A stretch of DNA of 46,000 nucleotides, taken from assembly GCA_965649825.1 (NCBI GenBank), contig OZ287722.1, positions 1-46,000 of the forward strand, written 5' to 3'. The notes beneath the pieces are model-generated. The model was not told where the DNA came from, did no database searches, and was given only the letters and a program-made list of their open reading frames with translations. The translations under genes were made by a program, and so were the position numbers. Origin of the DNA: Penicillus capitatus (Eukaryota > Plantae > Chlorophyta). Position 1 is the first letter of the stretch, and each line of letters begins with the position of its first letter. Positions 3,281 through 37,158 of the stretch are shown one piece after another.

Positions 3281-4396
3281 TCAAGACAACTTCACTGGCT
3301 CTGCAAACACATCCATCCACACAGGCATTAGATAGCCATTGAGTGAGAGAAAGAGTGAGATGCCGTACTCGAAGTCGGCTTCTGACGAAGAGGTGGTGGT
3401 GCTCGATGCACTCTTGCTGTGTAGGTAGAGTGGCATTTCGAAGTTGTCAACAGCAAAGACTAACCCATCCGTCTCGCTAGCGTCTTTTTCAGGTGTTCTG
3501 GGGACTGGACTACGGTCAGAGTCTTCAACGTGACTGGATGATACGAACTGCGTCTGAAGATCGATGAAGGAACTGACTTTCATGGGCAGCGGCGAGTTGA
3601 AGTCTGAGAAAGAAGTCAGATGTCGAAATCGGCTCCAGTCATTCATTTCTGCAAAAGACAGTGTCTCGGCAGTGGTCGCCGTATCGGGCATAACAGATTC
3701 CCCTTGATTCGAGTCAAGTAGCACGGCAGCACCAATCACCTCCTCTTCCCCTTCGCTGGCCGCCGAAGCGGCCTCTTGTAATTTTGCATGCGATTCTTTG
3801 TTGAATACAGCCGAATCTGATGCAAGTCCGACGGCGACAGGCACTTGTGTTGTTGGATGCTGCTCTGCATGGACTTCTTCTTGTTCATGTGCTGCCATCA
3901 CCATCTCCTGACTTGCTCGTGCAGATTCGGATTCATTTTGCATCGCCTCCACGACCTCGCCACTGTGCAAGACGCTTCCAGTGCTATCATCAGCGAACTT
4001 GCGAGACGAGGGGGTCGACACTTCGTGGTCACTCGTGGTGCGATGCACAAAATCGTCCGCAGAGTCGATCGACCGGCTCGGTCCAGCGTCAGGGGTGTCC
4101 GTCGGTGACTGCATCATCAACGTCTGTATATTGGCGCGTTGACTTTTCTCGAGCGGAACCGGCACTTCCACTGGAAGAACGGCCGTCCGGCGAAACAACT
4201 CCGTCATCTTGTCCATTCGCTCTTCATACTTGCGCAGCCTCTCTCCCCTCAAAATAACAAGCCCCGAATTCTGTGACAGTGTTGCCTCCAGGTCGCGCAT
4301 TCCTTGTTCATCGAGCTCCTCTTCCGAGTACTCGAACGGTTCTGATTTTCGTTTCCGTCTGTTGGAACGTAAGAATCTTATAGGGAAGAGACCCAT
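3281..4396 (-). CDS. Uncharacterised acidic Ser/Glu-rich, largely disordered protein
   Basis: Single long open frame; first ATG at 4396 (MGLFPIRFLRSNRRKRKSEPF) with an in-frame stop upstream at 4463-4465. Basic NLS-like RRKRK, low-complexity body, hydrophobic C-terminal tail. No family recognised. Confidence 0.6.
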   Translation of the reverse strand: MGLFPIRFLRSNRRKRKSEPFEYSEEELDEQGMRDLEATLSQNSGLVILRGERLRKYEERMDKMTELFRRTAVLPVEVPVPLEKSQRANIQTLMMQSPTDTPDAGPSRSIDSADDFVHRTTSDHEVSTPSSRKFADDSTGSVLHSGEVVEAMQNESESARASQEMVMAAHEQEEVHAEQHPTTQVPVAVGLASDSAVFNKESHAKLQEAASAASEGEEEVIGAAVLLDSNQGESVMPDTATTAETLSFAEMNDWSRFRHLTSFSDFNSPLPMKVSSFIDLQTQFVSSSHVEDSDRSPVPRTPEKDASETDGLVFAVDNFEMPLYLHSKSASSTTTSSSEADFEYGISLFLSLNGYLMPVWMDVFAEPVKLS

Positions 4397-4800: not shown

Positions 4801-6206
4801 ATGCGAAAAGGAGTTTGCGCTCTATTCTGCTCATTAACTGTGGGACTCGTTGCCATCTTGTTTAGGTCTTCGCTTAGGTCTGCATCAGAGACGCCGGTGT
4901 CGAACAAGATGCGCAAAATACTCGTTACGGGAGGCGTTGGCTTCATCGGTAGGTCCCATCTGTCGTGCCGTAACACTGACGGCTGTGATGACAGGGAGTC
5001 ATACATCGGTGGAGCTCGTGGAGTCGGGATACAACGTCACGATCATTGACAACCTGCAGAATTCGTTTTTGGACGCTTTTGAGCGTATGAAGGAACTCGT
5101 GGGCGACAAGGCTGAGTTTTTGAAATTCAAAAAGGCGCGTGTTAAACGGCGCATTGCTTTATCTGTGATGTGACTGACAGGTTTGTTTAGGTGGATCTCA
5201 AAGATCTCGCAGCGCTGGATGCTGTCTTTTCAGAAGAAAAGTGACGACGGCTACTGTGGCGGCGTGTGATGCGAGCGTGATGTGACGTTTAGATTTGATG
5301 CTGTTGTGCACTTTGCTGCGATGAAAGCGGTGGGCGAGAGCATGGAGTTTCCCATGCTCTACTACAAGAACAATGCCATTGGCACTATCAACCTCTTGGA
5401 CGCGATGGGCCGACACGGATGCAAAACAGTAACACCGATCACTTCTTTGCTGACAGTACAGAGAACTGTGTGATCGTTGTGTGACCAGTTGGTGTTTTCG
5501 AGTTCCTGTACGGTCTACGGAAATCCCAAGGAAGTCCCTATCACCGAAGACCATCCGCGATCGGCGATTAGCGTTTACGGACGGACAAAGCTGTTCAACG
5601 AAGATATGATGATGGATCTCTCTACTGCAGACAAAGAATGGAAGATCATTCTACTGAGGTGACGCGGATCGACTGTCTCTCTGTCGCATAGAGTGTTGCG
5701 AGGTGTTTAGGTACTTCAATCCCGTCTCTGCCCATCCTTCCGGTCGAATCGGCGAGCATCCGATCGGCATTCCGACGAATCTGATGCCATTCGTTCAGCA
5801 AGTCGCCGTCGGTCTCCGTCCCGAGCTCAAAGTCTTTGGGGATGACTACGAGACGCGTGATGGGACGTGCATTCGAGACTACATCCATGTGATGGATCTC
5901 GCCACCTCACACGTGGCCGCCTTGCAGAAGGTCATCGAGACGGAGAACTATGGCTGCCAGGCGGTGAATGTGGGAACTGGCAAAGGGACGACGGTCCTGG
6001 AGATGATCCATGCCTTCGAAGAGGCCAGTGGAAAGAAGATTCCCTTTACCGTGGTCGGCAGACGTGCCGGAGATTCGATTGCCGTCTGGGCAGCAACGGA
6101 CCGTGCCGAGAAGGAACTGGGCTGGAAGGCAAAGTTTGACATTAAGGACATGTGCCGCGATCAGTGGAAATGGGCCACTCAAAATCCCAAGGGATACGAA
6201 AACTGA
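4801..6206 (+). CDS. GALE: UDP-glucose 4-epimerase
   Basis: [11 protein letters not shown]|GSH NAD-binding motif, [25 protein letters not shown], catalytic [31 protein letters not shown]. Five introns, one GC-AG (5135-5190). In-frame ATGs at 4801 and about 4908. Confidence 0.97.
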
Positions 6207-6226
6207 CTTGTTTCCTGGATGCTGCT

Positions 6227-7378
6227 TCATTTCTGAAACTGCTCTTCCTTGTTGTCTTCTGTCCTTCGATGTTTAAGCCATGCCTTCAACTGCCGATCGA
6301 TGCGCTGTGCCTCCTCAGTTTCGACGGCGTTTTGCTGAGAGCCTTCGACGCCTAATCGATCGATCTCGCTCAATTCCTCGTGCAGTGTCTGCATCGTCCT
6401 CATCTCACTCTAAGACATATGACCACTGCACCATCGCAAAGAGAAGAGACGTTGTCGACAGATGATGAGAGGAGTAAAGGATGAACGATGTTCTTCAGAT
6501 AGGACTCCAGTCGTTTCTTGTTGCTCTTGTACCCGGATCGCACAGCCGCCAGCGCCAATGTACCTGGAAAAGTGAGAGAAGAGTGACTTCGTACACAAGG
6601 GCATCTCATCGCACTTGGCGCGAAGAGCAAAGGAGCATCGGTCTCCAAGAGACACTGCGCTGCGACGTAAGCCGATTTTCGCACGGCCGAGAGATCGTCG
6701 ACATCTTCCAATCCCACTCTGTCGTGCTCGCCATTTCGCATTCGCCGAGCAATGTCCTGCACAAACGAACACGCGCATCGTGCCTTGCACACGTGTGAGA
6801 ACAGTGCCCCACTTCCATGAAGCCATCGATATCTCTAAAAGGCGTGTGGACGATGAGATCGTACTGCAGCGACTTGACCAATCGCAGCTCACTCTTCCTC
6901 AACTGATGCTCCGTCAGAGAGGGAAACGCATGAACGAGATTGTCGATCGTGAGGTATTCCTCTTCGATTTTGGACGCCACGTAGATGCATGCCATAAAGA
7001 GTTTGCTGGGATCCTGATTCATCACACTATTATCAATGTAGAATCTCTTCAGAAACATCATGGCTGTCGATTGGACACGCAGAGAGTAACTCTGCTGTTG
7101 GCAAAATGCCAGAATACTCTTCTCATAATACCGCAGTAACAGCCGCTCCTCTTCTTGCGTCACAGGGGGGTCTGTTCACGACGACTTGACGTCTGATGAT
7201 GGAAATAGGCAGCTGAACCTGCGAGGCTGTCCATCAGAGCAGCACTGCGCGAAGCGGCCCGTCGTTGTTCCTGTAAAGATATTATGTTCCAAGTAAAGAG
7301 AGAAGTCGGCACTACTAGCTGGTCCTTCTTAAACGTCCATCGTGCGCGTTGAGACGATGACGCGAAGTTCATTTCCAC
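6227..7378 (-). CDS. CCNH: Cyclin H
   Basis: MEMNFASSSQRARWTF N-terminus; cyclin box EEERLLLRYYE...STAMMFLKRFYIDNSVMNQDP...CIYVASKIEE; QYDLIVHTPFR; last exon ...QRIDRQLKAW...QFQK* with stop at 6227-6229. Confidence 0.9.
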
Positions 7379-7562
7379 GCACGCAATGGTGATGATGATC
7401 CGGGCGTTACGCCACCGACCACCGATCGGAGCGTCGCTGCGACAATCTTCCTCTCGATTTCGGCCACATCCACGCCGCTCTGTGGCAATACGCGCCCAGA
7501 TGCCACGTCAGTGAACGCAAGGACATTGCTCTGTGCGACACTGAAGAATAGGAGCGGCAAAG

Positions 7563-8482
7563 ATGGCGCAGAATAAAGTACTGCAGATCTGGAGAACGGC
7601 TCAAGCTGTTTGCTTCGACGTGGACAGCACACTGTATGCCACAAACACCTCGACACTCTTTAAAGGACACGATTGCATGGACAGGATCCAGGAAGAGAGC
7701 ATCGACGAGTTGGCCGATTTCTTGGGCATGGGCGAACGCATTGCTCAGCTAACGGAGCGGTAGAGTGGTGCTTGTGTCCACACAGTGCCAGATATGATTT
7801 CTGTCCAGGGCTATGAACGGGAAGATGAGATTTGAGGAGGCGTTGAAAGAGAGACTCGATGCCATGCAGCCATCTGCATCAGACGTGGAACGATTCTTGC
7901 AGCAACGTCCTCCCAGAATAACGCAAGGCATCCCTGAACTCGTCTCTGCATTGCACGGGCGTCAAATTGCAGTGTATCTCATTTCTGGCGGATTCCGAGA
8001 TATCATTGGTCCGATAGCAGACAAGCTGGAAATCGATCGCAGCCACGTCTATGCTAACACCATCTGCTTTCATGTACCTCACAGTATTTGTCTCACTTTT
8101 GCTCACTCTTTCGGTTTGTAGGAAGATGGGAGCTATGCAGGATTTGATGCAACGGAGTTCACCTCTCGTAGCGGAGGCAAAGCAGCTGCCGTGCAGTCTA
8201 TTAAGGTCACTCTTCTCACACAAGGCATCTTTCATAGATACGCTTCCTCTAGGACACCCACGCACATCGCCCCATGGTCATGATCGGCGACGGGGCTACC
8301 GATCTGGAAGCGCGCAGCCAAGGCGCCGTAGATCTCTTTATCGGGTAATCGCCTTTTCGTTTACTCGAATGGCTCATCGGTCATGGATTAGGTATGGAGG
8401 GGTCGTTGAGCGTCCTGTGATCGTGGATCAGGCGGATTGGTTCGTCAGAGACATTGGCGTTCTGCTAGATGCTTTAGATTGA
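7563..8482 (+). CDS. PSP: Phosphoserine phosphatase (HAD family)
   Basis: AVCFDVDSTL|IQEESIDELADFLG (HAD motif I DxDST), YLISGGF (motif II), FTSRSGGK, MIGDGATDLEAR (motif IV), LFIG|YGGVVER. Five GT-AG introns; stop TGA 8480-8482. Confidence 0.95.
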
Positions 8483-8507
8483 AGGCAAAAGCAATCCCTT
8501 CCTTTCT

Positions 8508-10612
8508 ATGCGATTCCTCACTCGACTGCGCGTTCTTCTGAGACAGGGTCTTCAGAATTGGCTCATCGAGTCCTACGCGACGCATGGCGTCACTCAGCGA
8601 CGTCCCTTTGCGGTTCCGCACCTCGTCGAGGATGCGGCGTGGACAGAGGACCTTCAGTTGAGATCCTTGTCGATACCGACTTCCTGTCGGAGTGCACCGC
8701 TGCGTCCCTTTTCATCTCCTTATCGTTTATTCACGACAAAGAGCGACGATTCCGAATCATCTGATGAACCTCCAACGATACGCGACGATTCGGATGCGTC
8801 TGATGAACCTCCATCGCCTGCTTCTCTCCCCAGCGACGATGAATGGACTGTCTTTGACGACGGCAATGCACAAGTGTCCTCTTTCAGATCTGTGACGCTG
8901 TTTGGAATGCAAGGGTCGTTTAGGAAGATGCAGAAGAGCCGCCTTCTTTTGCGAAAGTGCAATCTCTACAGAGAGAAGCGTGGGACACTTTGAGCAAAGA
9001 GCGATCGCATTTGTCGAAGGCAGTGCAAGAGCAATACCGAAAGGCATTCATGTCGGCTACCGTGTACTTCCGAGTGCATTATCGAGATCTCACACTTCTG
9101 GAAGTGTGTGACATGATCGCGCATTTCTCAGGCCTTGTTCCTGGACCTAAAGGACGCCTCTGGGCAGCTAGACAATGCAATGAGACGCTGCTGCACCTTG
9201 TTCAGATGTGGTACGAGAAACTCAGCAACGCCGAATCGATCGATCCCGGCACTTTCTCGCAGACGATTCGAGTCATCGGCCGATTCGGCAAACCTTTTCA
9301 GCAGCATTGCGCCAAGGCCGATCCAGATAATAGTTTATGGAAACTTGCTGATCTAGCCACATCTCTGGTGCCTTCCGCGACTCCCGAAATGATCGTTTCG
9401 ATGCTCGACGGATTTGCAAAGCTTCGCGTGTTCCGAGACAGATTCCTGGCAGAAGTGACGCTGTATACGGAGCTCAACATTGAGAGCTTCGCTCCGTGGA
9501 ATCTGATTGATCTGTTGGACGCATATCGGCGACTGAGGTATGAAAAAACGACCCGATTAATGGGCAAGATTTCACATGCCATTATACCTCGTGTGCATGA
9601 ACTGTCGCCGGATCGCTTGGCAAGACTGCTCTGGATCATCTCATCTTTTCGCTGGAAACACACGACAGAACTGAACGATGCACTGCTAAAGGTATGACGC
9701 GTGTGATGTCACTCATCGAATGCGATCTGTCTTCAGGAGAGCATGCACAGAATTGCAGACTTCTCACGAAATGCCATGATCCTTTTGGCAAACCACCTAG
9801 CAGCGACATATCACTATCCGGGCGATGTCTTTGTCCATACCGTATGTCGAGATTTCGTCAAAAGATACCATCTTTTTAACCACACACCTATCGCTATACG
9901 GTACCTGGTGGCATTGGCAAAGCTTGGATGCCGGGATGAGGAGGCCATTCATTTCGCCAGAAACATCGTCATGAATGCTCCTTTGACACTCAAACATGTC
10001 CTGCTGGTTGGATGGTCCCTCAGCATACTGGACGCTTTTAATGAAGAGGCCACCAAATGGTGGATCCAGAGAGTTGGGCAGGCCAACTATTTAAACACCA
10101 CGCTTATCGAAAAACGTTACTTCTATCAAACCCTGTTGCATATCTATGTGTTTCGGCCTGATCTTGGCCGACTGCTGGATGTGGATCCCGAATTCGAGGA
10201 GGTCTGTCTGGAGTCGTGGAGACAGCGCGTGAAAGAGAAAGCCTATACTTCTCATGGCGTGCTGCAGATTATGACAACCCTCAGAGAACTGGGATTCTAC
10301 TGCTTTCGATCGCACTTTACCTTTGGCCGTCGTCTGAACATCAGCATCTTTTTTCACAGAAGATACACGATTCAGATCGGCATTTTCGCCGAAGAGGGTT
10401 TTGCCAACAACCGTCAGCGACTGAAGGGTCCGCAGATCTGGAAGCGACAGTTGTTGGAGAAGATGAATTGGACGCTGCTGAAAGTGCCGATTCTGGAATG
10501 GGAGAACCTCAACAGTCGCGTCGAGAAGCGGGAGTACCTCAGGAAGAAAATCGTAGAGATCATGTCGAAACGCATCGCCATGGCAAAAGGTATCCGGCCA
10601 GAAGCCAATTGA
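8508..10612 (+). CDS. RAP-domain/FASTK-like helical-repeat RNA-binding protein with organelle-targeting-like N-terminus
   Basis: Three exons (introns after NAQ and LLK). Arg/Leu-rich N-terminus MRFLTRLRVLLRQ; repeats MIVSMLDGFAKL, NLIDLLDAYRRL, RLARLLWIISSF; RAP-like C-terminus GPQIWKRQLLEKMNWTLLKVPILEWENL. Confidence 0.8.
8745..8813 (+). repeat. Imperfect coding tandem duplication (30-nt unit, 39-nt period)
   Basis: gacgattccgaatcatctgatgaacctcca (8745) and gacgattcggatgcgtctgatgaacctcca (8784) encode DDSESSDEPP and DDSDASDEPP. Confidence 0.75.
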
Positions 10613-10643
10613 GCGTAAAGGACTGATATTACAGAGGGCTATC

Positions 10644-12695
10644 CTACTCCTGACGCGGTTTCGACCTATACTTCAATTCTCCAATTAATGTCCAGGCAGT
10701 TAGAGCAATCCACCCGATATTGACAGGCGACAAGACCACACTGAACATGCCATAGTATGCCTCAGTCATGATCATAGAACGCCCGAAGGAGGCCATGGAA
10801 AAGAGACCCAAGAGGATGTAAACGACGAGGGCTTTGTATTTCTTGCAAACAGATTTTGATGTGTCTTTCCAACGCTGAAGTGTCCATACCATCCAGACGG
10901 TTGCGGGCAGAACAACGGTGATGTAGAACTGACAGGCGCGGAAAGGCATCTCGGGACTGTGAACGGCGACGAGATCTGAAGAGGCGGGCTGGATATGAAT
11001 GGTCGGGACAAAGACAATGCCGAGCGAGTTATCGGACAGCACACGCGCAGCATACCAGGGACCAAACAGCAAGAGCAACGAATAGCACAGCTGACCCCAC
11101 CAGAAGACAGGAAACTGTGTCGCTGTCTTGAATGCCAAGAAAGGAGATTGGAAGTAACGCATCCATCTCATCCCCGAGTTCGAATTCCGTCTGTTCCTTG
11201 TCTCTTCCGGAGTGGCGTCTCGTGCCGTGTCGATCTGCACAAGAGCGATGCCTTTTGGCAGAAGCAGGAGCAGGAAGATGTGCATCATGATCAGCAAGAC
11301 GAAGAAATTCTGAAAGACGGAGCACCACGAGTATTTCAAGATTAGGGACGTCGGGAATTCTTGCGGATACGGTTTTGGCTTGGTCCTCGGCTCCAGCGGC
11401 CGCCTCTCAGAGAGCGCTATGCGATTGGATGCATCGAACCGGACACGAACCTGCACAGAGGGAGTGCGATCGCCGCACAGTGATCGAAAGAGCGTTTCGT
11501 TCAGCTGCGACTCGAACACTGGCCCTCCATTCACGGCGGCCAACTTCTCCACCGTGTGCGCCGCTACAGCATCGTCTCCGCAGTAGATCAGCGCATCAGC
11601 ATGCAGGTCTTTGGAAGGAACTGTCACATCATCTCTTTGCCAGACAATGACTCGTAGCGACGACAGTGACGACGCCGTTCCAGTATTCCCCAGAGGAGCA
11701 AAGTGTGGATTCGGTGGAGATGTGATCAGCACCACAGCTGCCTCTATGCGCATGGCTGCATCCAGAGGTCGGATGATAGCCGGCTGCGATGCCTTCTCCA
11801 TTTCGAAGTCTGCAAAAGAGAGATGGCCATCATCGATGGCCACGATGCGGAATCTCCTTCTTATCTTCCAATCTGTCGTCTCCAGCTCCAACAGCGTCGA
11901 AGCATCGCCCTCGTGCGATCGGTGCAGATGATTACCGAATGCATCGTGCAGATGGCCACAGAACCACGCCGCCACTCCATACTTCCAGAGCACTCTCTTC
12001 AGTTCCACTTGATTTCCGACAAAATAACGCGCCTCCTTTCCGACGGTGCTCATCGGATAATGCCCGTACGCTATGTAAAGAGGACGACAGTTATTGCCAT
12101 ACCACTTTCGCATGTCGGTCACAATCTCGATCTCCAGCTCGTTCAGAATCTCCTCCGTCATCATGCCAAAAAAATTCGTGGGGCTGCGCAGTCCAATATC
12201 GGGAACGAGATCGATACCGACGAGACAGTAGACCGGACAGGCAGTCGATGCAAAGAAGGGATGTATGAGGATACGTCTCGACGCCCATGCCTCGCCCATC
12301 ACTGCAGAGGTTCGATAGGAGTCTCCTTCTCCGTTCCGTTTCCCGGTGTCAAAAACATCGTGATTGCCGCGGATGTCGATAAAAGTGGATGATGTGTTGC
12401 CCATCGCAGGGCGTGCCATTTGGACCATTTCTCTGTACTGTGTCCATTCCTTGGGCCGCTGTTGCGATCTACTGCTGTATGGGACCTTGGCATGGACGAG
12501 ATCTCCCGTAATCAGAACGGCGGAAAAATCGAAAAGGGGGAAGAACTGCTGAAACAGAATGCTCAAATCCGCCGCCCTGCCTTCAGCGACCTCGCTGAAA
12601 TGCAAGTCCGAAAGGTGCAGAAACCACGAGACCTCCGCCTGTGCCACTCTGGGGGTCCAACAAAGCAGGACGGAGCATAGGATAAGGGCAAGCAT
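10644..12695 (-). CDS. TMEM62-like calcineurin-type metallophosphoesterase with C-terminal transmembrane region
   Basis: 683-aa uninterrupted ORF. Signal peptide MLALILCSVLLC; metallophosphoesterase motifs LSDLH, TGDLV, RGNHD, YGHYP, CGHLH, then LELETTDWK; several hydrophobic segments after residue about 460. Confidence 0.85.
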   Translation of the reverse strand: MLALILCSVLLCWTPRVAQAEVSWFLHLSDLHFSEVAEGRAADLSILFQQFFPLFDFSAVLITGDLVHAKVPYSSRSQQRPKEWTQYREMVQMARPAMGNTSSTFIDIRGNHDVFDTGKRNGEGDSYRTSAVMGEAWASRRILIHPFFASTACPVYCLVGIDLVPDIGLRSPTNFFGMMTEEILNELEIEIVTDMRKWYGNNCRPLYIAYGHYPMSTVGKEARYFVGNQVELKRVLWKYGVAAWFCGHLHDAFGNHLHRSHEGDASTLLELETTDWKIRRRFRIVAIDDGHLSFADFEMEKASQPAIIRPLDAAMRIEAAVVLITSPPNPHFAPLGNTGTASSLSSLRVIVWQRDDVTVPSKDLHADALIYCGDDAVAAHTVEKLAAVNGGPVFESQLNETLFRSLCGDRTPSVQVRVRFDASNRIALSERRPLEPRTKPKPYPQEFPTSLILKYSWCSVFQNFFVLLIMMHIFLLLLLPKGIALVQIDTARDATPEETRNRRNSNSGMRWMRYFQSPFLAFKTATQFPVFWWGQLCYSLLLLFGPWYAARVLSDNSLGIVFVPTIHIQPASSDLVAVHSPEMPFRACQFYITVVLPATVWMVWTLQRWKDTSKSVCKKYKALVVYILLGLFSMASFGRSMIMTEAYYGMFSVVLSPVNIGWIALTAWTLIGELKYRSKPRQE

Positions 12696-12737
12696 GCGAA
12701 ACGTCCGAAGGGAAAGTTGGCTGATCGAAATACGGTC

Positions 12738-15491
12738 ATGATATACGGTTACCTGTCGATGCTAACGACGAGGAAGGGAGCTTGTCTGACGATGCGGCGT
12801 CGACTACACCGTCTTCGGCATCTGCACCAATATCCAGGACGAAAGGGAAAGACAGAAAGATCCGTTTCACTGCCTCGACGTATAAACACCGCCTCTTCGG
12901 GCAAAATTGGGAGCAGTCGAGAAGTCAAAGGAGGATCTCGCCCTTCCGTGTCCATACGAGAATCTTCTGTTGCGGAATGGATTCAGCAGACAGTGATCTC
13001 TGTACGCAAAGTGATGCATGAAGTGCTGACTTGGTGCCGGATTCTGATGCCGTGGATCTTGGTACCATGTCTCACTCTTTTGATGCGGCCATCTCGCGGA
13101 CACGGATATCTCACTCCTAACCTCTCACAGCATTATTCGCATGTCACCTTTGCCAGCGCTTCGAAGTCGATCGCAGATTCCAAGATCACCTGGGTTGACA
13201 TTCTGCAGTATAAGTTTCAAAAGGTCCGGACGAGAGGTGTCTTCTAGCGAGAGATATGCGATTCCGGCTGTTTCGGGTTCAGGTCATGTCGAAGCAGATG
13301 TTTGGCAAACTGTGTGCCGTGCTGTTGGCAGCAGCGCCGATCGTCGTTGTCGGTGGTCTGTGTCTCAAATTGGCCTCCGGAGATCGACTACAACACTCCA
13401 TGTTCAAAGCCTTCACCATCATGGGCGACGTACCAGGCACGTCCATCCCTACCTCACTTCCTTATCCGTCCAATGTCGTTACATGTCAGGAGCCGATGCT
13501 GTGCAGGACGACAGTCCACATGTCCTGTTCATCGGCAATCTGATCTTTTTCGCTGGGATGTTCACTGTGGCGGTGACATTGGGAATCGTCTGCGATGACA
13601 TCAGCAACTTCGTCTCAGATGTGCGGCATGGAAACTACCAGATGGTGGAAGACGGACATACCGTCATCCTCAATGTCAACCGCCTGCTCGGTCCTGTCCT
13701 GCACCAAGTGACACCCTTGTTGTTCGATACGTCTGTCGACGAGAGAGGAACTGTGGATCAAAGTAGATCGAAGCGGCCTCCAAAGAACGTCGGCATTTCT
13801 CCGGACCCATCGTCATCTTGGCCGATATGGACAAGGAGGAGCTCGAAAGATTCGTCGCCGAGAAAGCGGAAGGCCTCAAACTCGAAATCTCCACACGCCG
13901 AGGATGCACACACGATGCCATGGATCTCAAGAGAGTCGCAGCTGGCAAAGCACAGTGCGTGATCTGGTTGGAACCTGAAGACGACGAGGTCTCAGTGGCA
14001 GCGAGGAGAGCGTGCGCCATCGCAGCGTTGAAAGCTCTCGGCTCGGGCAGCAGCAAGACTGCCAGAATGATCGTCCAGACATCGCACGATTCCTCTAAAT
14101 CTCTCTACCAACTGACTGACGTGCCCATGGCTTATCGGACACCGCCGCTGATGCAGGAGAGTAAATTGGATGTTATGGAACTGTGTGAGGAAGAGAACTT
14201 CGATCGACTGCTGGCGCAATGTGCCTTGCAGCCTGGACTGAGCGTCCTTTTTTCGGAAATCTTTCAGCACAATGCGGGGAAAGAGTTCTACGTCACACCG
14301 AATGCAGAATTCGCGGGGCAGGTCTATTCCGAAGCACGGCGTCGATTTGACACAGGCGCTGTGTGTGGAATCTACACTCCGCCACTGGAGAGTCCCCACA
14401 GCGATGGGAGTGTGCTGCTCAATCCTCCAGAGGACACTGTCATGAAGAAGGATGACCGGCTTATTGTGCTATCCAGCGATCGAGAACACGCCAATTCACA
14501 AAAGAAATCCACACCGCACGCATCGTGGGTCAAAGATGTGACCCGAGAGTACACGCCCACCTGGTCACACAGTATTGTGGTTCTGTGCTTTGGAGATGAG
14601 GGCAGAGCCGACAGCGGCATCGTGCAAGCCATCAGCATGTTTGCTCCCAAGGGAACAAACGTAACTATCGTCGCTTGGTATGTGTCGCGGACGGTGTACA
14701 CAGAGAGAGTTGCTTAAATGGGATGTTTGTTTGTGCAGTTCTGCTCCTGAAACGGACGGGAAGAATGGAGACTGTCAGGTCTCATACATCGAGGGCAATC
14801 CGGCATCGTTTAATACGCTTCGCAAACTTCAGAAGCACGAGATCGATACCATCGTCCTGGCCGGACTCGAAGATCTTCCACCCAAACTCGCAGATGCTCA
14901 AGCAAGCATTCGTCTCCATCTTATAACGTCCTCAGATCTGTTGCGCAGCTAATTTCAAGTCTGATTCAGATTCAGGAATGGGCCGAAAAGATATGGGAAA
15001 ACAAGAGAGGGTTCAATGTCGTCAGTCCATTGAATTCCTCCGAGACAAAGAAATTGGCAGATCACCTCATCGAAGTCGGCAGGTCAATGTCGGTGCCGAT
15101 TGCACTCGACGTTTTGCTGCCTTCCGAACTTGCGAGTGGCCTTCTGGTCCAAGTAGCCGGGGCGCCGATCCTGAACTTGGTCTTCAAAGATCTCATCGGA
15201 GACAACGGAGTTGAACTGTATCTCAGAGACGCGGAAGATTTCCATCTAATCGGAAGAGGACCATTGAAAGCGCACGAGGTGTCTGATATGGTCCGGCAGC
15301 ACAGCGAGACATTTCTCGGGTGAGATCTCCCTCCGACGCCATCGCTATGTGACTCCTACTGCAGTATCATGCGAAAAGACAAGAGCTGCGAGATCGCTCC
15401 CGGAGCCATGGAAGAGCACGAGTATGAGGCAGGGGAACGAATTGTTGTACTGGCAGAGAATTTTGGACCGGAATCCGTTGCAGATGCGTGA
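12738..15491 (+). CDS. CASTOR/POLLUX-like cation channel (PEC-like) with N-terminal transit-peptide-like extension
   Basis: TM helices flank a pore segment (FKAFTIMGDVPG|ADA...GMFTVAVTLGIV); VRHGNYQMVEDGHTVILN; RCK-like EISTRRG and YIEGNP; ADAQ|LISSLIQ; C-terminal ERIVVLAE. Six introns, two GC-AG. Start could be ATG 12738, 12759 or 12792. Confidence 0.85.
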
Positions 15492-15808
15492 ACGATGTGA
15501 CCAGGAATACGCTTTCGTATCGGAGTTGCATAATATAACTGGCCTTTTGTATGTGACAACGTCTCAGTCGCTGTCCGTGCTGCTGCATGAAAGCGTCGCT
15601 GTCCAATGGACTAGGCCTTTGTTGATGACATCGGACTCTTCCAGCCATCACGTGCCTGCTTCGTCGCGTCGATGGTCGAGCGCATCGAATCTGTCATAGG
15701 ACGCGTACTGACGCAGTAGATAAGCCAGCGCTGTACGACGAGAGCGGCACGAATGGGTGACGTGACCCTCTCGGAGTTGTGTATCAGACCATGGTGTCTT
15801 CGTACCGT

Positions 15809-16057
15809 ATGAATCTCTCCTTCCTTTTTGTCTTCCTCTGCCTCAGCGCTGTTGTGGCGCTCCGCCGGATAACGGAAGAAACTTATGGGTTTGTCGGCGT
15901 CAACTGTCAGCAAATGGTCGGTTGTGCATCGCAAAGATACGTGTCCAGTGATTCGTACTTTTCACAGGGAGAATTTTGTGAAAATGATGCCGAGTGTTGC
16001 AAGCATCATTGCGCAAGCCCCGAGGGCGGTCTCAGCTTCAACATCTGCCTCGACTGA
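15809..16057 (+). CDS. Small secreted cysteine-rich peptide, knottin (ICK)-like
   Basis: Signal peptide MNLSFLFVFLCLSAVVA. Removing a predicted 51-nt GT-AG intron (15917-15967) gives a 65-aa precursor ending CQQMGEFCENDAECCKHHCASPEGGLSFNICLD (C-x6-C-x5-CC-x3-C-x11-C). Confidence 0.65.
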   Translation: MNLSFLFVFLCLSAVVALRRITEETYGFVGVNCQQMVGCASQRYVSSDSYFSQGEFCENDAECCKHHCASPEGGLSFNICLD

Positions 16058-16335
16058 AAATCATCTCCATCCCTTGGACTGAGAATCCCATTTGCCAGTG
16101 AGTGGTACGAAGAGAGAGACGTTCATGAACCACAATCCTCGCAGTTCTGCAGGAACAGTATTTTTTCAAATGTTCACGGTGTGTTGCGACACTGTCCCTG
16201 TTCCGACTCGAACAGCAAATACTAGTTTCGCCAATACCACACCGGTCGTAATGTCCCCGTCCACGTTCGACATTTTCGCGACGAGCGACGTCATGTGCCT
16301 CATTTGAGCCCATTCGCCTTCAGTCTATCTCCGTT

Positions 16336-17332
16336 ATGTCGACGTTGACCATCGGAACGTCGAAAAAGACCTTCCGACTGACGGATCTCGATGTATCCGT
16401 GCAAGAAACTCTGTCCGATGCTCTCGGCGAAGGGTGCCACCTACTGCCCGAAATCGAAGCCGATACCGAAGCGTTGCAGTTCCTAAACGGATTCTTGAGA
16501 CACGTCGACGTGCAAAGACGACTGGCCCTCGCCGAAGTCGAGCACGCGTCTTTGCTGAAAGAGGATTATCGACTTGAAGGTGCGTCTCTCGGTCGCTGAG
16601 ATCCCGGGTTCGACGTTTCTGTACCAGAGCTGCGACTTCAGGAGCAGCTGAAAGTCATTGGTGTGACGCGCGATGCATTGACAAGAGAAGCGCAGGCGAA
16701 TGTCGCCCTCGTGGCCCGGATCACAGAGAAGCTCCAGCTGCGTCAGCCGCATTTCAATCACGTTTGCTGCAAATGGACACAACTCTGTCTTCGACAACAC
16801 TCGGCAAACGAAAAAAGAGTAATCATCACACTTTCACTCGTCGACGCAACTGGATTCCGGTTACAGAAGTGTGTGAGTGATGTTACACGAGAAACAATGA
16901 AGATGGCGGAGCAGATGCGAATGGTAAAAGGGAAACTCGCCGCTGCTTGCGAAGCCCGTGCGAAGATGGTCTTGCCACAGGCGCAGTTACTTCCCGATGC
17001 CGAGAGCAAGATCGAACAATACAGGCAAGATGCACAAGAGTACAAAGCCGCCTTGGAGGAGAGGGGATTTGGCCACGAGGTAAGTATCATGCAGGACCTG
17101 TGCCGTCTTCGCACTTAACAGAAGACTGTAGATCTCGCACGAGGCGATCGTGGAGAAGGCAGAGCATCTGGATCGATACAGGGCCGAAATTGCGAGTCTG
17201 CACAAGGAGCTGCTGCCATACGATCGGCAACTGCCACGCAACATGGACACAGCCCGAGATCGATTGCGGGAAGTGCGAGAAGAGATGGAGCGTGTGACAT
17301 CCGCCATTCGTGAAAAGATGGTTACCGACTAG
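16336..17332 (+). CDS. HAUS1: HAUS augmin-like complex subunit 1 (AUG1)
   Basis: Coiled-coil protein with HAUS1-like pattern: LPEIEADTEALQFL...KEDYRLE|ELRLQEQL; C-terminal ISHEAIVEKAE...LLPYDRQLPRNMDTARDRL. Assignment is from remembered family pattern only. Confidence 0.6.
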
Positions 17333-17337
17333 CGCTG

Positions 17338-19062
17338 TCACGACGAGGCCGGAACTGTCGCACGTCTCCAACTGGGGACAGCTTTGTGCGGAACGTGTCG
17401 AATGAAAGCACTGGTGCAAGGCTTGGATGGCGAAGAAGGGTTCGAAGTGGCATCGCAACGTCGCCTCGAGGCATCTGTCGATTGAACGAGTCGCGCCGGA
17501 TCGCGCACCGCCTCTACGACCACCTTAGGGGAAGCACTGACGTATTTCGCGGGAAAGAGCGAGATTATTACTTGCTGTCGTAGCCGGTCGATGCGTTCTC
17601 TGCGTCTTAGCTCTGTCATCTGTCGCTCTCTTCTTCGCACGAGGCGTCTGTCCAGAATCTGTCGGTTGCGTTGTTTGACTCTCTCCCGCTTTGCTTCCGC
17701 AGAGAAGTGCGTGTGCACGTGTTGCGTTTTCTGTCGCCGTTGAATCATCTCGGCAGCTCTGCGTTCGGCCTCCTGTTCGAACGCCACTGCCGGCTGGCTC
17801 TTCTCATGGACGCTTGTCATACCTTCTTGCGTTCCCTGTAAGCACGGACGCTTTTCTTTTTTTCGAGCTGCGCCTCCCGTATCTTTCTTTCTTCCTCTTT
17901 CTGAGTCTCCATCTTTTTTTGCGCCGCCTTTTTCTTCTTTGCCGCTTCTTCGGCTTTCTCTGCCTGCCACGACTGAACAAGTTGCCGTTGTACCTCACGC
18001 CGAAGCCGAGATTCGTGATCCTTTTGCTTTTTCTCTCTATCCTCTTGTCGAAGATCTCTGTCTTCTTCCTCGGCCAAACAAAGGCATTCGTTCTTGGCTC
18101 TCTCTTTATCGTTGCGCCAGCGACGAATGGCGTCTTTCTTCCTTTCTGCCAGGTCGCAGAAGACGGAATGCCATCTTCCGTGACGGACAATTTCGTTTGG
18201 AGCGATGCCGATCAACTCTTGACGACACAGCTCTGTCGTCATTAAATAGTCACCCTTGCAAATGCCAAGCAGCCTATAGAGAACTGATTTCGGTACGAAG
18301 ACACGCGTCATCGTGCGACACTGTGCCTGAGATACTCTCGGTGATCCTCCTCTCGCCATCCGTCCGTTTCGCCGTGCTGTTCGAGATAGGCATCGTATTC
18401 GAGTACCTCGGGCAGCAACCCGCTTTCGTTCTGCTTTGCTCTACACAGACGCGAACGCTGGCGAGCTGTATTACCAGAAGATAACATACAGAGGTGTGTT
18501 TGTCGCTGGTTTAGACGTCGCTGAACCGTTCCACTGCGGGGTACTCATGCGTTCGATCATGAGTTCGAGGTCGCGGTCAAGAAGGGCTTCCTCGCGCTCG
18601 AGCATCTGTCGTTGTCGGATCTCTTTGTGGTGGAAGGCATAGATTTCGTTTTCGACGCTGGTCAACGCGTCGCGTAAGTCCTCCGCTGACTTGGCGTCCG
18701 TCTTCGTCTCTTCGAGCTTCAGAATTGACACATACATCCGTCAGCATGCAGCAGTTCTCTATGAGTTGTGTGACGACGAGAGAAGATAGGTCTTCTGTCC
18801 GTTTCCGGATGCGGCAAACGTCTTGCAGCAGAGCCCGTACGAAGGAGCGGCGTTCGAATTCGGCCGATGTCTGCTCGTCTGTAAACTGCTGCTCCACGCC
18901 GGCGTCTGAACAAGGTACGCGGGTGCAACGAAGCGAAGCTTCACGTTTGGTGTAAAGCTGAGCCGTTTTGAGCCATCGCTTCGTCTCCAAGCGTTTTGCA
19001 TTCTGTTCTTCGTCTGTCGTCATTGTCGTCAACGCGACACACTTGCTGTCAAAATATGACAT
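17338..19062 (-). CDS. CCDC112-like coiled-coil protein
   Basis: Spliced LLPEVLEYDAYLEQHGETDGWREEDHREYLR|LLGICKGDY; EIVRHGRWHSVFCDLAERKKDAIRRWR; K/E/R-rich coil; C-terminal VPHKAVPSWRR. One GC-AG intron (18274-18326). Confidence 0.7.
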
Positions 19063-20783
19063 ATGTCTTGCCGGCGTTACGCTGTGTCCAGTTCTATTCT
19101 GTATTCTCTTCTATCCATTTCCAGTTTACAAGTGTTGGCGTTTGATTTGTGATGTAAACGGATGTGACAGTCCGTGGGCGATGGTGAAATACACTGTGAA
19201 CTGAGGTTATGCTATGTTTGTTATTTTCTTGTGAAAGTTTGGACAATGCATCGGCAACACAAATCACTTAGGTTATGAATCTATGCATCCGTCTGTGAGT
19301 AGTGAGGTAAGTATCCACTGTACATTTTCCGATTACTTCACTCTAGTGCAGCATGCGTAGATTCCAGTACCTTTATGAACTCTTCACAGGATGCTATAGG
19401 TTCTGTTGGTTGCCTCGATCCTCCCTCTGCAATAGGGACAAGTAGTGCTCTGTGGATGGCATCGAGAACTACTCGAAATAGCGCTGCTATTCTTCGAACT
19501 TATTGTGCATCCTATTTTTTATGTACAGAAGAAGGACTGTAGGCGCTCTGGGAAGACAAGCGAAAAAGTTTATGACGACGGTTGTGAGGCCCTTAAAGTG
19601 AAGGAAGAAGAAAACGAAGAGGCTGGCGATTGGGTATGCAGCTTGACGTGTGTGCCACTGTTGTGATATTCTTCTATATTCATGTTGTGTTATTTCACTT
19701 ACCGATTTGACTGTCGTGAAGAGATCTAAGATGAAGACGTATATCAAATAAATGGAATCCTTGTCTTCTTTAAATGGAAGTCAAAAGTCTCAATGTACCA
19801 CTCTTTTAAGCGCTTCATGGCTTTTGTCTCCTCGAGTTAGTACCTCTTCACACTTGCTATACGAAAACGCTAATTCGTCGATGATGTTTACCATTGTAAG
19901 ATTCCTTCTCTCGCGTCCGTGATTCACATCTTTGTACCGTGAACATGCAGATAGGGAGATAAATTCGAGATCACATCGGCCTCCAGCCAGGGGCATATGG
20001 GTAATGGCCCATGCACAAGTTGATGTCAAATGCCGTCTCGGGCCCATGACGTAGCGACCGCTTCGACACCCAGACGACAGGAAACAGATTACGGTTTACA
20101 GGTGAGTATCGACAATCAGACAGACACAAAAACCAACGCGGTTTACGCTTAATTAATTTCGACGATTCGATTGGTGCCGCTACGATCGTGTCATCACATG
20201 ATTGACTCAGGGAAGTCAATCCGGCACTTTAACAGTTTAGGACGGTCGTATCATTTTTTCTGATCTGAATCAAGTTTAGGGAACCTTTTGGCAAGCACTT
20301 TACGTAAAAATGCGGCAAATGGCGTGAGCGAGTCCAATAAGAATAAAGCACGGTTAGAAAAACGGTCAGGATGGTGGCGAGCATAAGCATAACAGTTAAA
20401 AGACAAAAACGTGATTCCACCTGGTGGCACTACAGGTATAAATAGATATTTGAGAGTCCTCGATCGATAGTGAGGCAGCTAGCGGAAGTTGTTTGCTAAG
20501 AATTGAAAAAGATGCGAGAAATCGTATCGGGTAAATGCTTGCTTCCATCAGGGTGGATAAAAAGATTCCATCCAAGAAGGCGCACTTGTAAGGAGAGATC
20601 AGTGTTGTTCCACCGACGGCTTATGAGAAAACGGATGTAGGCTTGCGCATGCGATCGGACAATACGGCGTTCACATGGCGATTTAATAAACTCGGTGTAG
20701 AGCACAAGTTGAGAACGACCAAGAAACAGTCACATAATAATTCAAACATGACCACTATGGACGTGATATACTGCACCATTAGA

Positions 20784-31186: not shown

Positions 31187-32585
31187 ATGTCGAACGCATC
31201 ATTCGTCCAACGCAACACCAAGTCCTGGTTCACACGCACCGCTCGATGCCACGTGCGCCGCCAAGGACCCACGCGCCGCCGGATCCGGCCCATCTGCGCC
31301 ACGACGGCAGACGGGCGAACGACTCAGCGTGTCGTAGCGGACTACGAGGCCTACACCGTACCGCTCTACAGTCGACCCGACGTCGTTCTTGTCTCGGGCA
31401 AAGGCACACGTGTGGTCGACAGCGAAGGAAAAGAGTATCTGGATTTTTCGGGCGGAATTGCAGTTAATGCATTGGGCCATGCGGACGATCGAGTGATCGG
31501 GGCAGTGCTCGAGCAGGCTGAGAAGTTGATGCACACAAGCAATCTCTTCCATTCTCGACCTGCCATCGATCTCGCGAAGAGACTGGTCGAGCATTCCTTC
31601 GCGGACAAGGTCTTCCTGTGCAATTCGGGGACGGAGGCGACGGAAGCGGCAATGAAGTTTGCAAGAAAGTGGGCGTCTCTGCGTCAGGGCATCGATCCTT
31701 ACGATCCCGAACAGAACGGGCCGTTTGAGATTGTTTCTTTCACGGGTGGGTTTCACGGAAGGACGATGGGAGCACTGGCACTCACGCCAAAGCAGCGATA
31801 CCAATCTCCCTTTCTCCCGATGCTCCCTGGCCATCGATTGGCAACTTTCAACGATCTGGACTCTGCTGCTTCGGCTATTCAATCCGACAAGACGTGTGCT
31901 GTCATTGTCGAACCTGTCCAGGTCATTTCTCACTCCTCCTATACCGACCCCTTTTGTAACGCGATGGGATGTGAAGGGCGAAGGTGGGGTGAAGCTGGCG
32001 ACGATGGCTTTCTTGCAAGGATTGCGTTCTCTGTGTGATGCACATGAATGTCTGTTGATCTTTGATGAAGTTCAGTGCGGCATGGGACGTTGTGGAAAGC
32101 TCTGGGCGCATCTACTGCATGATGTGACCCCTGATATCATGACCTTGGCCAAGCCTCTGGCTGGAGGCCTACCAATCGGCGCCGTTCTCGTGAAACAGCA
32201 CGTCTCGGATGTCATGCAGCCTGGAGATCACGGTTCTACCTTTGCTGGCAGTCCCCTCATCTGCCATGTCGCCAACACCGTTTTCGATATCATAAAAGAT
32301 CCCGCTTTCCTCGATCAAGTCACGGAAAATGCACGCCTTCTGCATACCGAGCTCTCTCGTGCACTGAAAGACCATCCATCCGTGCAGGAGATACGGCATT
32401 CGGGTCTGCTCTTCGGTATCCAATGCCGTGGTCCTGTGGTAGATATCGTTACTAAAGCGATGTCCGAGGGCTTGATCGTCATCACAGCGGGAGCAGGGGA
32501 TGTGATCCGTCTGGCCCCTCCACTGAACGTCGCAATCGAAGAGATACACGAATGTGTGGACAAGCTCGCAGTCGCTTTTAAATGA
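31187..32585 (+). CDS. argD: Acetylornithine aminotransferase, organelle-targeted
   Basis: EYLDFSGGIAVNALGH, FLCNSGTEATEAAMKFARK, FHGRTMGAL, VIVEPVQ|GEGG, LIFDEVQCG, PLP lysine in TLAKPLAGGLPIG, HGSTFAGSPL. One intron. Confidence 0.96.
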
Positions 32586-35107: not shown

Positions 35108-37158
35108 TTAGCCACTTACATCTACATTCAAATCTTCTGTCTGCGATGGTGGTGAGGGTGGAAACAGTTGGTCGATCTGCCTCTTTAAATATGGCACCTG
35201 TTGGGCAATATGCCACGGAAATTCATCCTGTGCCAAATGCAGTACGGTCCATCCAACGGCCTCGAGCATCCGAATGCGCCACAGTCGATAGCAGAGAATC
35301 TGCAGAAGGGGATTGGAAAGGCAGGCAGGGCCTTGGATGGACATACTTTATCAGGGGCATTCACAAATCGCTTGCGGGGGAGGATAATCTCAATGCTGAT
35401 GCGATGACCAGCGGGATTGGTTGCCAAAGTGGCGCCGACGCAAATCGTATCCAGTATTTTACACTCGCAGATGTATCCAAGCCGACGTATGGCGAAAGAA
35501 TAGGCCTTCAAGAGACTCGGAATCTTCTTGAGCGTCTGCGTCACTCTCCAGTGCTCCATGCTTGCCTACAGCGACTTCTCTAACCGTACATCTCACAGAA
35601 ATACAGAGCGCGTGAACCTGAACGATCTCAGACGACAGCAGATCGTTGATGTCGACATCTGGGTGCGAGAGCCGAAGTGTGACGATTGCCTGAGCTAATT
35701 GGATCAGACGTGCCTCGGCGAAGGCAAGCAATGGATACTTGTTCAGATAATGCGCCGCCCATTGCACCCACTCGGGTGTGAGCTGCTCCAGCATAGCCAG
35801 GGACCAGATGATGAGGATCGTTGTGGATGGGACATCCTCTGTCTGCTCGTAGTCTTTCATCGAGGGTATAGCCTGCAGCAGTCCTTGAGGTTTATGGCCC
35901 ATGTTGGCACAGGCGACCAGCAGAGTCGAGATCTCGTTAGTAGCGAATGCACTCTGATGTTCGACACAGTACGCATCGAGCTTCTCCCGAAACGCCGGGC
36001 TTGGGAGGAAGCGCAGTCGAACCATGGATCCGACGAAGGTTGCCATTTCATACGTCTTGAATGTGTCCATGTGCTCGAACGACCATCTCTCCATCTTCTC
36101 GAGCAGGGTCACGAGACCTTCTGGAGGAATAAGGAGTTTCTCAAGTGCCCATGTGATGTTGGCCACCTGCCGGGCGTCGCTGAACTCGTCAACACGCGCT
36201 TCCAGTTGACGCAGAAGTGGCGGCAGTAGATTCACAAAGTCTTCATAGTTTAACTGCGCCAGCGCATGGAGAAGCAAAGAGGTATCCTGTGGCGTAAACG
36301 CCGCCACCTGTTGCTTTGCCACTGCGGCCAACAACGGCATGAACTCTCGCGCTCCCACGATGTCGAGTCGAGCCAGACTGTTGGCAAAGAGCGAGATGCA
36401 CTGGGGATTGAACGAAGAGATGATGCGAACGGCATGCATCAACAGCGACTCCATTGCCTGATAGCCATTGGACGTTCCGAACGACACGTGCAAAGATGCT
36501 TGACCCAGGGTGGCAAACGCCCATACGATGTTCGACACATGCATCGCCTCAAAATCATTCAACTTCTCCATCGTTATCTCCAAAAGCTCCTGCCCAGATC
36601 TTACGCCTCTCGAAAAGGAGCGAGCGCTGTGCGGCGGTGTACTTTAAAGATAGGATGGTGCAGGATGATGCTCGACATCGCAGACTCGATGCCCAACGCC
36701 CCGAGCTGATGCAGAAAGGTTGAGACATTGACGTGATCCATACAATGCCGCTTGGTCTTAAGTATGGTATGCAGACGGTCCAGTCCGCGTTCGAACAACG
36801 GCAGCTGCTTTTCACGTGGATGCACGACTCGATACCCTGGCCCTTCTAACCAATGTCGCTCTTTCTGCTCGCCACCCTCTCGCAAATCCTCGACCACTCC
36901 CTCACTGATTTCCAAAACGTGCTTGTTGAGCTGCAGCGCACGGACATCGGGATGGTGCGTCGGCTAGAGGAGGGCACCGTAGGAAGGGGCGTCTCTTCGG
37001 CATCCCACCTGTGGAATGGATGGTCCTGTTTTTCGACCGCCGCCGCCGTCTGAAAAGCCACGCGCTTCGGTGAGCGGCCTCTGCTGCAGCACGGCATCGA
37101 TCCACCTTCCAACAACGCACCAACTCCCGCGCAGCGCCCTCCTCCGCAAAGCGATCAT
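35108..37158 (-). CDS. RAP-domain/FASTK-like helical-repeat RNA-binding protein with mitochondrial-presequence-like N-terminus
   Basis: MIALRRRALRGSW...; repeats DHVNVSTFLHQLG, AMHVSNIVWAFATLG, PQCISLFANSLARL, PQDTSLLLHALAQL, ARQVANITWALEKL; RAP-like C-terminus RLWRIRMLEAVGWTVLHL. Confidence 0.88.

Follow-up and report, generated by a model that had tools for sequence, protein, structure and literature searches.

Does the interval between a Castor/Pollux-like channel gene and HAUS1 hide a small split gene whose product comes into view only when a stop-free intron is removed? The question was raised by an open reading frame (ORF) in the window, which is the whole 46,000-nucleotide (nt) stretch of contig OZ287722.1 analysed here. 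The initial annotation had read this ORF as the gene of a secreted cystine-knot peptide (knottin), masked by an intron of 51 nt. That gene and that intron are very probably real, because the frame is restored in a sister species only by splicing, the exons are free of insertions and deletions (indels), substitutions are biased to third codon positions and all six cysteines (Cys) of the spliced product are conserved. The fuller proposal, in which 15791–16057 (+) is a two-exon nuclear gene of a green alga for a secreted, probably cystine-knot peptide, is favoured here with clearly less assurance.

The ORF ends at the TGA of 16055–16057 (+), its upstream in-frame stop lies at 15758–15760, and two in-frame ATGs are available, at 15791 (context ACCATGG) and at 15809. 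Read straight through from 15791 it gives MVSSYRMNLSFLFVFLCLSAVVALRRITEETYGFVGVNCQQMVGCASQRYVSSDSYFSQGEFCENDAECCKHHCASPEGGLSFNICLD, with a hydrophobic N-terminus followed by seven Cys. The segment 15917–15967 is 51 nt long, in frame and without a stop (GTCGGTTGTG...TACTTTTCACAG), and has GT-AG ends; the seven Cys and the stop-free GT-AG stretch, as described at the outset, were all confirmed in the sequence. When the segment is taken out, the reading becomes ...VNCQQMGEFCENDAECCKHHCASPEGGLSFNICLD / CQQMGEFCENDAECCKHHCASPEGGLSFNIC, and the six-Cys framework claimed for it is indeed obtained, with the spacing C-x6-C-x5-CC-x3-C-x11-C. The intron position falls in loop 1 of this framework, between Cys I and Cys II. 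The parts of the proposed gene are the following:

15791–16057, + strand: candidate gene, whole; two exons, one intron, 71-residue precursor
15791–15916, + strand: exon 1; 42 codons for the signal peptide, the N-terminal extension LRRITEETYGFVGVN, Cys I and QQM
15791–15859, + strand: predicted signal peptide; residues 1–23, hydrophobic core LSFLFVFLCLSAVVA, likely cleavage after VVA
15917–15967, + strand: intron, phase 0, 51 nt; GTCGGT...(GTGAT branch-like)...TACTTTTCACAG, ending CACAG / TTTTCACAG
15968–16057, + strand: exon 2; 29 codons and TGA, encoding GEFCENDAECCKHHCASPEGGLSFNICLD with Cys II–VI
15700–15721, + strand: conserved upstream block; 22 nt, GACGCGTACYGACGCAGTAGAT, ~70 nt upstream of the start codon

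The spliced precursor was compared exhaustively, using HMMER, with 1.84 billion representative proteins. One true match was obtained, P0002 (66 aa, E = 8e-8), which covers residues 2–43, matching exon 1 alone, and breaks off at the exon-intron junction; it is a prokaryote-style gene call running from exon 1 into the intron. Another match, P0003 (E = 1e-4), is a bacterial repeat protein of 1224 aa and was dismissed as spurious and repeat-driven. The contig of P0002, here called L002 (1.68 Mb, ENA assembly ERZ26696514), is syntenic with the window in the order epimerase, RAP, TMEM62-like, Castor/Pollux, the ORF and HAUS1, and shows 83.8% identity to window 5782–19133. The orthologue on it is arranged as follows:

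L002 10001–10126: exon 1
L002 10127–10178: intron, 52 nt, GTCAGT...TTTCACAG
L002 10179–10268: exon 2

Since 52 nt is not a multiple of three, the read-through is frameshifted in L002; it ends as ...GRILRKK* and the Cys-rich part is lost. Spliced at the same GT and AG, L002 gives MAFSDRLNLSFLVVFLCLLSVVAARQMAEEIYGFVVVNCYQMGEFCEKNDDCCKHHCKRPEWGLGFKICLD, i.e. ...NCYQMGEFCEKNDDCCKHHCKRPEWGLGFKICLD, with all six Cys at unchanged spacing and the stop codon kept. Two further copies were available: L003, a near-identical contig of the same sample (ERZ26696514) with the same gene structure as L002, and L001, an ENA metagenome contig of 702,701 bp (ERZ25074695) with the same gene structure as the window. 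The intron GT and AG are kept in all four copies. Removal of the intron restored the frame in L002 and L003, and the intron holds all three indels of the gene, its exons being free of them.

These data bear directly on the alternative that nothing is spliced, the product being an 82- or 88-residue read-through protein with seven Cys and the GT...AG ends a coincidence. In its favour, neither the window nor L001 has a stop in the 51 nt, which are in frame in both, and the DNA of the 5' part, with the additional TGT codon, is conserved. Set against this, the 52 nt of L002 and L003 bring a stop after GRILRKK and cost the product five of its six core Cys, exon 2 is still under purifying selection in the spliced frame, all three indels of the gene are inside the 51/52-nt stretch, and an odd number of Cys is less likely in a secreted peptide. 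Absence of splicing is hardly credible, and the stop-free, in-frame character of the 51-nt intron looks like a coincidence. The seven-Cys isoform that had been predicted from intron retention is possible in the species of the window, but impossible in the sister species, where the 52-nt intron shifts the frame.

Within the gene, L003 and L002 are distinguished by two replacements in the signal peptide, a pair of synonymous changes and a single change in the intron, and the two contigs probably represent either both haplotypes of a diploid alga or two strains living side by side. In the sister species, the same situation seems to be met with in the window and L001, which also carries the neighbouring RAP-domain protein: they are 99.77% identical (48 differences in 20.6 kb) and, judged by this identity, are two haplotypes or strains of the same organism. 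Their only two differences in the gene, at 16024 and 16028 (L001 16282 and 16286), are adjacent and both nonsynonymous; they change E to D and G to S, and thereby PEGG to PDGS in the turn of loop 4. It was observed separately that L002 (ctg303812, 168x) and L003 (ctg303731, 156x) have similar coverage in their one sample. The expectation that gene finders would miss or mis-splice such a gene was borne out, as the prokaryote-style calls on L001 skip the ORF and P0002 runs through the intron.

From the Castor stop to the HAUS1 start there are 844 nt, in which 17 indel events separate the window and L002. None of the 17 falls in the 216 nt of exons (P = 0.0066); the intron has three (net +1), the upstream DNA four and the downstream DNA ten. 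Substitutions over the whole coding sequence (CDS) are distributed 12/10/25 over the three codon positions (P = 0.004); exon 2 has 20 substitutions (22% diverged), distributed 4/2/14 (P = 0.0009), and no indels. The ratios of nonsynonymous to synonymous substitution (dN/dS), calculated by the Nei-Gojobori method for the window and L002, were:

Whole CDS: 0.30
Mature part: 0.16
Exon 2: 0.11
Signal peptide: about 0.95
Same alignment, other two frames: 1.3–1.7
Neighbouring genes: 0.13–0.30 (dS 0.44–0.51)

Three of the six Cys codons differ between the species, by synonymous change only (TGT/TGC), two of them among the five within exon 2. The variable positions cluster in loop 2 (NDAE/KNDD) and loop 4 (AS/KR, G/W, S/G, N/K). 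Positive selection on the loops, an idea that came from the 22% divergence of exon 2, was rejected, most changes being synonymous and omega 0.11. By these substitution patterns the locus is a protein-coding gene under purifying selection, in the very frame that the proposed splicing creates.

Two details of the original model had to be revised. It had started translation at 15809; this position is TTG in L002 and L003, and the ATG at 15791 is kept in all four copies, so that the start codon is placed at 15791. It had also assumed a short pro-region ending in a dibasic RR. Because RR is replaced by RQ in the orthologue, a dibasic-cleaved pro-region is unsupported. The segment after this position, EE-x-YGFV-x-VN, is well conserved between the species, and the mature peptide would probably start directly after the signal peptide (VVA|L). 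Upstream of the gene, the 22-nt block at 15700–15721 is the same at 21 of 22 positions in the window and L002, amid indel-rich intergenic DNA, and may, from this conservation, be a promoter or an element of the 5' untranslated region (UTR). An alternative splice, 15941–15994, was discarded as its AG is not conserved in L002, and so was an antisense ORF at 15611–15934, which is broken in L002.

Whether the boundaries fit the introns of this genome was judged from nine introns anchored by homology (GALE, ArgD) or by comparison of the two species, and checked by hand. Automatic two-species discovery was too permissive (4389 candidates, then 78), and only the following hand-checked, anchored introns were used:

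4949–4994: GALE intron, 46 nt
5241–5292: GALE intron, 52 nt
5429–5488: GALE intron, 60 nt
5659–5710: GALE intron, 52 nt
31922–31976: ArgD intron, 55 nt
15320–15364: Castor intron, 45 nt
17080–17131: HAUS1 intron, 52 nt
18441–18489, - strand: intron of the gene at 18.4 kb, 49 nt
6410–6459, - strand: cyclin intron, 50 nt

The nine are 45–60 nt long (mean ~51 nt), and the 51 nt of the candidate are thus of genome-typical length, as had been stated. Their donors (GTAGGT, GTGACG twice, GTAACA, GTGAGA, GTAAGT, GTATGT, GTCGAC and GTCATT) are weak beyond the GT, their acceptors are YAG or AAG, and motifs like CTGAC, GTGAC or GTGAT precede the acceptor by 10–20 nt. The candidate (GTCGGT...GTGAT...CACAG, 51 nt) matched them in both length and splice sites.

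The same comparison helps to weigh an intron shifted by 4 nt, 15921–15971 (GTTGTG...GGGAG), which would give CQQMVEFC... in the window and CYQMVKFC... in L002 with unchanged Cys spacing. This variant is GT-AG too, is conserved in L002 and keeps the frame in both species. Its acceptor is a poor GAG, and a spliceosome scanning downstream would reach the better YAG (TTTTCACAG|G) before it; GTCGGT/GTCAGT, the donor after ATG, is nearer to the anchored donors; and the shift brings a non-conservative E/K difference, against an invariant GEF with the boundaries 15917–15967. We regard the shifted intron as very improbable and keep 15917–15967. As a side observation, two other introns, ~5135–5192 (GALE) and ~13436–13491 (Castor/Pollux-like), seem to stay in frame only with a GC donor (aag|GCGCGT... 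and cag|GCACGT..., boundaries approximate), and GC-AG introns may be fairly common in this genome.

What kind of peptide would the spliced gene encode? Its framework is that of knottins, C-C-CC-C-C with loop lengths in the usual range, and it is the same in L002 and L003; membership in the knottin class is putative and drawn from this framework only. A profile search of the PDB returned cystine-knot peptides in 12 of 12 matches, the best being Wrightide R1 (E = 0.06), whose Cys align one to one with those of the algal peptide, beginning at Cys I. The weak Pfam matches, too, are all to knottin families. The spliced form gave eight PDB matches (best E 0.11) vs two for the unspliced form (best E 0.93), and the alignment started from Cys I only with the spliced form. 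The N-terminus has a 15-residue hydrophobic core (peak Kyte-Doolittle value in a 15-residue window of 2.7–2.9) followed by VVA; its type is conserved although its sequence varies. It is likely that the precursor is secreted.

Two groups of observations weigh against reading the locus as the gene of a secreted, probably cystine-knot peptide, the first touching the gene and the second its product. A generic knottin regular expression gave no direct match in the six frames of the window. When any GT...AG of 40–70 nt may be freely removed, the real window yields two six-Cys loci, and second-order Markov simulations with the same free choice of intron yield, on average, ~0.8 such peptides in 46 kb; with the intron freely chosen, the Cys framework by itself does not exceed what chance would give. 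ORFs of 80–120 codons are frequent in every frame of the window, and codon bias, ~0.1 bit per codon in bona fide genes and ~0 for the 88-codon ORF, was non-discriminating. As the pattern is within chance and codon bias is too weak, independent evidence was needed. The comparative support comes from two species, each with two haplotypes, and the spliced form was not found in any public protein or transcriptome set searched. (The second of the two six-Cys loci, at 3800–3840 (+), CNFACDSLHLCCWMLLCMDFFLFMC, is hydrophobic, overlaps a long minus-strand ORF and is chance-like.)

The simulated ~0.8 patterns per 46 kb and the near-zero codon-usage score speak for a non-coding origin, that is, a chance ORF in conserved intergenic or UTR DNA between the Castor/Pollux-like gene and HAUS1, with a pattern produced by free intron choice. 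So do the flanking non-coding DNA, which is also ~80% identical between the species, and the protein collections, which hold only prokaryote-style read-through calls of the gene. Such an origin is nevertheless improbable in view of the third-position bias (P ~0.001–0.004), a dN/dS of 0.1–0.3 in the spliced frame only, the exons without indels (P = 0.007), the conservation of the ATG, the TGA and all six Cys, and the broken antisense ORF in L002. A coding gene is the preferred reading.

As for the product, there was no significant match to a knottin family, the best values being 15–18 bits in Pfam and E = 0.06 in the PDB. All Pfam matches (Conotoxin_I2, Conotoxin, Toxin_12, Toxin_29 and UPF0506) were sub-threshold, with 10–18 bits vs cut-offs of 21–27: PF02950 (O-superfamily conotoxin) had 15.4 bits vs a gathering cut-off of 25.1, PF17557 (I2 conotoxin) 13.5–15.7 vs 27, PF07740 (Toxin_12) 12.0–12.7 vs 21, and PF08116 (Toxin_29) 10.1–13.6 vs 25. 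The AlphaFold2 model of the mature peptide, made from the single sequence, was uninformative (mean predicted local distance difference test score, pLDDT, 46; predicted template modelling score 0.23), and the signal-peptide cleavage was read by eye with the -3,-1 rule. The peptide carries a net charge of -5 in the window and of -2 in L002, and CCKHHC is conserved; because of the anionic charge and this motif, a metal-binding or non-knotted fold is possible.

Accordingly, a real gene with a real intron might encode something other than a knottin: a secreted or vesicular peptide with another disulfide topology, or a Cys/His metal-binding peptide around CCKHHC. The insignificant family matches, the uninformative model (pLDDT 46), the acidity of the peptide and the two His of CCKHHC, invariant in both species, all fit this, and a C-C-CC-C-C pattern can occur without a knot. 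On the other side, the loops of 6/5/0/3/11 are inside the classical inhibitor-cystine-knot range, all 12 weak matches of the PDB profile search are knottins in Cys-for-Cys alignment, and a signal peptide speaks for an oxidising compartment, where the six Cys would be expected to pair. A non-knottin product is, in our estimate, unlikely. A true knottin topology is the reading to which we incline, by a modest degree, and the gene is taken as a real orphan, its product as probably knottin-like. Of the inhibitor-cystine-knot assignment made initially, the spacing stood, but the Pfam thresholds of the O-superfamily and of the spider toxins were not reached.

The following course is proposed. The mRNA would lose the 51-nt phase-0 GT-AG intron and be translated into the 71-residue precursor, made up of a cleavable signal peptide of ~23 residues and a mature peptide of 48 residues, the latter with its conserved 15-residue N-terminal extension and a 31-residue core holding the six Cys. 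The hydrophobic N-terminus would direct co-translational entry into the endoplasmic reticulum and the secretory pathway, where the six Cys could form three disulfides. A compact, disulfide-rich, probably cystine-knot fold might result, its last loop spanned by a beta-hairpin (turn PEGG/PEWG, then L-x-F-x-I). It is from the sequence features described that secretion, the disulfide connectivity and the knot are inferred. Outside the cell the peptide could serve as a stable module that binds a protein target, whether as inhibitor or as ligand; because it is acidic, such a role is favoured over that of a membrane-active antimicrobial, and a membrane-lytic, cationic antimicrobial function is less likely. 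Any particular target or biological role, whether in defence, antifouling, enzyme inhibition or signalling, is speculative.

The gene has a very narrow distribution. No homologue beyond the orthologues was found among the 1.84 billion cluster representatives (HMMER) or in a word-indexed set of 5.8 billion clusters; a word-indexed search with the unspliced protein gave no match, a four-row alignment recovered only P0002 again, and exact look-up of four possible protein forms in a 15-billion-protein collection found none. In JGI metagenomes, [ED]CCKHHC and exon-1 patterns gave 420 pattern matches, none of which was confirmed, and GEFCE-x4-CC gave 120 matches that were essentially random except for one locus, L042, compared below. 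No paralogue was detected by tblastn in the window, L001 and L002 (~80 kb). Of the paralogues and algal homologues that the initial annotation had suggested looking for, only the orthologues in the sister species were recovered, and the gene is a single-copy orphan known from two sister genomes. No description of a green-algal knottin turned up in full-text literature searches, in agreement with the initial statement that no characterised chlorophyte example is known.

The host is most likely a green alga to which no sequenced relative is close, judged by one marker gene: the best named matches of the spliced ArgD are from Chlorophyta only, at 58–62% identity (Edaphochlamys, Volvox, Gonium, Chlamydomonas, Ostreobium, Bryopsis, Coccomyxa and Chlorella), which is consistent with the chlorophyte context assumed at the start. 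The genes of the window include UDP-glucose 4-epimerase (GALE), a TMEM62-like metallophosphoesterase, the Castor/Pollux-like channel, HAUS1, an XMAP215-type TOG protein, a cyclin, a GH17 glycosidase and acetylornithine aminotransferase (ArgD). In addition there are three calls of the FAST_1/RAP (organellar RNA-binding) type in or beside the window, a notably high local density:

9743–10612, + strand: FAST_1/RAP-domain gene
35459–36583, - strand: FAST_1/RAP-domain gene
L001 1–681, just upstream of the window: third FAST_1/RAP call, with faint Pfam matches

Synteny with the sister species ends at L002 13337 (window 19133). An LTR (long terminal repeat)-retroelement-like ORF pair (RVT_1/integrase and gag/protease) lies at L002 14927–19224, and a low-GC stretch (0.43) at 19–21 kb of the window.

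Tiny split genes for Cys-rich secreted peptides escape annotation, and this locus is a concrete case. It also illustrates that a two-genome comparison of indel placement, codon-position bias and frame restoration can validate such genes without RNA data. If the product is a true cystine knot, it would be a green-algal, anionic, single-copy addition to the scaffold and a new stable mini-protein for structure and binding studies. That it is the first member of a green-algal knottin family sharing ancestry with the wrightide/alpha-amylase-inhibitor-like knottins of land plants is a long shot. Were it true, the origin of the scaffold would predate the chlorophyte/streptophyte split, and the phase-0 intron in loop 1 would be an ancestral or a lineage-specific mark.

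The cystine-knot scaffold is known mostly from plants, fungi and venomous animals. The O-superfamily and I2 conotoxins (PF02950, PF17557) and the spider families Toxin_12 and Toxin_29 (PF07740, PF08116), which were the top Pfam matches, have in common with the algal peptide the C-C-CC-C-C framework and a small precursor with a signal peptide. In contrast to these venom toxins, the algal peptide remains below the cut-offs (10–16 bits vs 21–27), has no conserved basic cleavage site beside the core (RR being RQ in the orthologue), and comes from a single-copy orphan gene of a non-venomous host of unicellular type rather than from an expanded family. The resemblance is most simply taken as that of a shared scaffold and not of family membership. 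The metagenomic locus L042 (Ga0207874_1000392, 1–130, - strand), which reads ...DPCKPNGEFCETGDECCNGFCRKNESG, has the C6-C5-CC-C3 spacing and GEFCE..ECC in common with the algal peptide, a similarity partly built in by the search pattern; unlike the small secreted precursor it is the end of a long, high-GC, bacterial-looking ORF, and the locus ends before the last Cys.

Within the green lineage, the Cys-rich defence peptides of plants (knottin-type antimicrobial peptides and alpha-hairpinins) are likewise small, secreted and rich in Cys. Alpha-hairpinins have been predicted computationally in green algae, from algal transcriptomes (PMC11591084). These are four-Cys helix-loop-helix peptides, whereas the peptide described here has a six-Cys framework with a CC pair; and typical antimicrobial peptides are cationic, whereas this one is anionic (-5 and -2). 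The best PDB match, Wrightide R1 (PDB 2MAU/4BFH), a plant knottin of the alpha-amylase-inhibitor type, was non-significant (profile E = 0.06; single-sequence E = 0.11, 16 bits). The two peptides, both from hosts of the green lineage, share six Cys, a loop 1 of six and a loop 2 of five residues, and the elements Q-x-G-E-[FY]-C ... CC ... H-C ... P-x-x-G. They differ in the third loop, which has four residues in Wrightide R1 and three in the algal peptide, and the latter is set apart by its acidity, its conserved 15-residue N-terminal extension and the intron inside loop 1.

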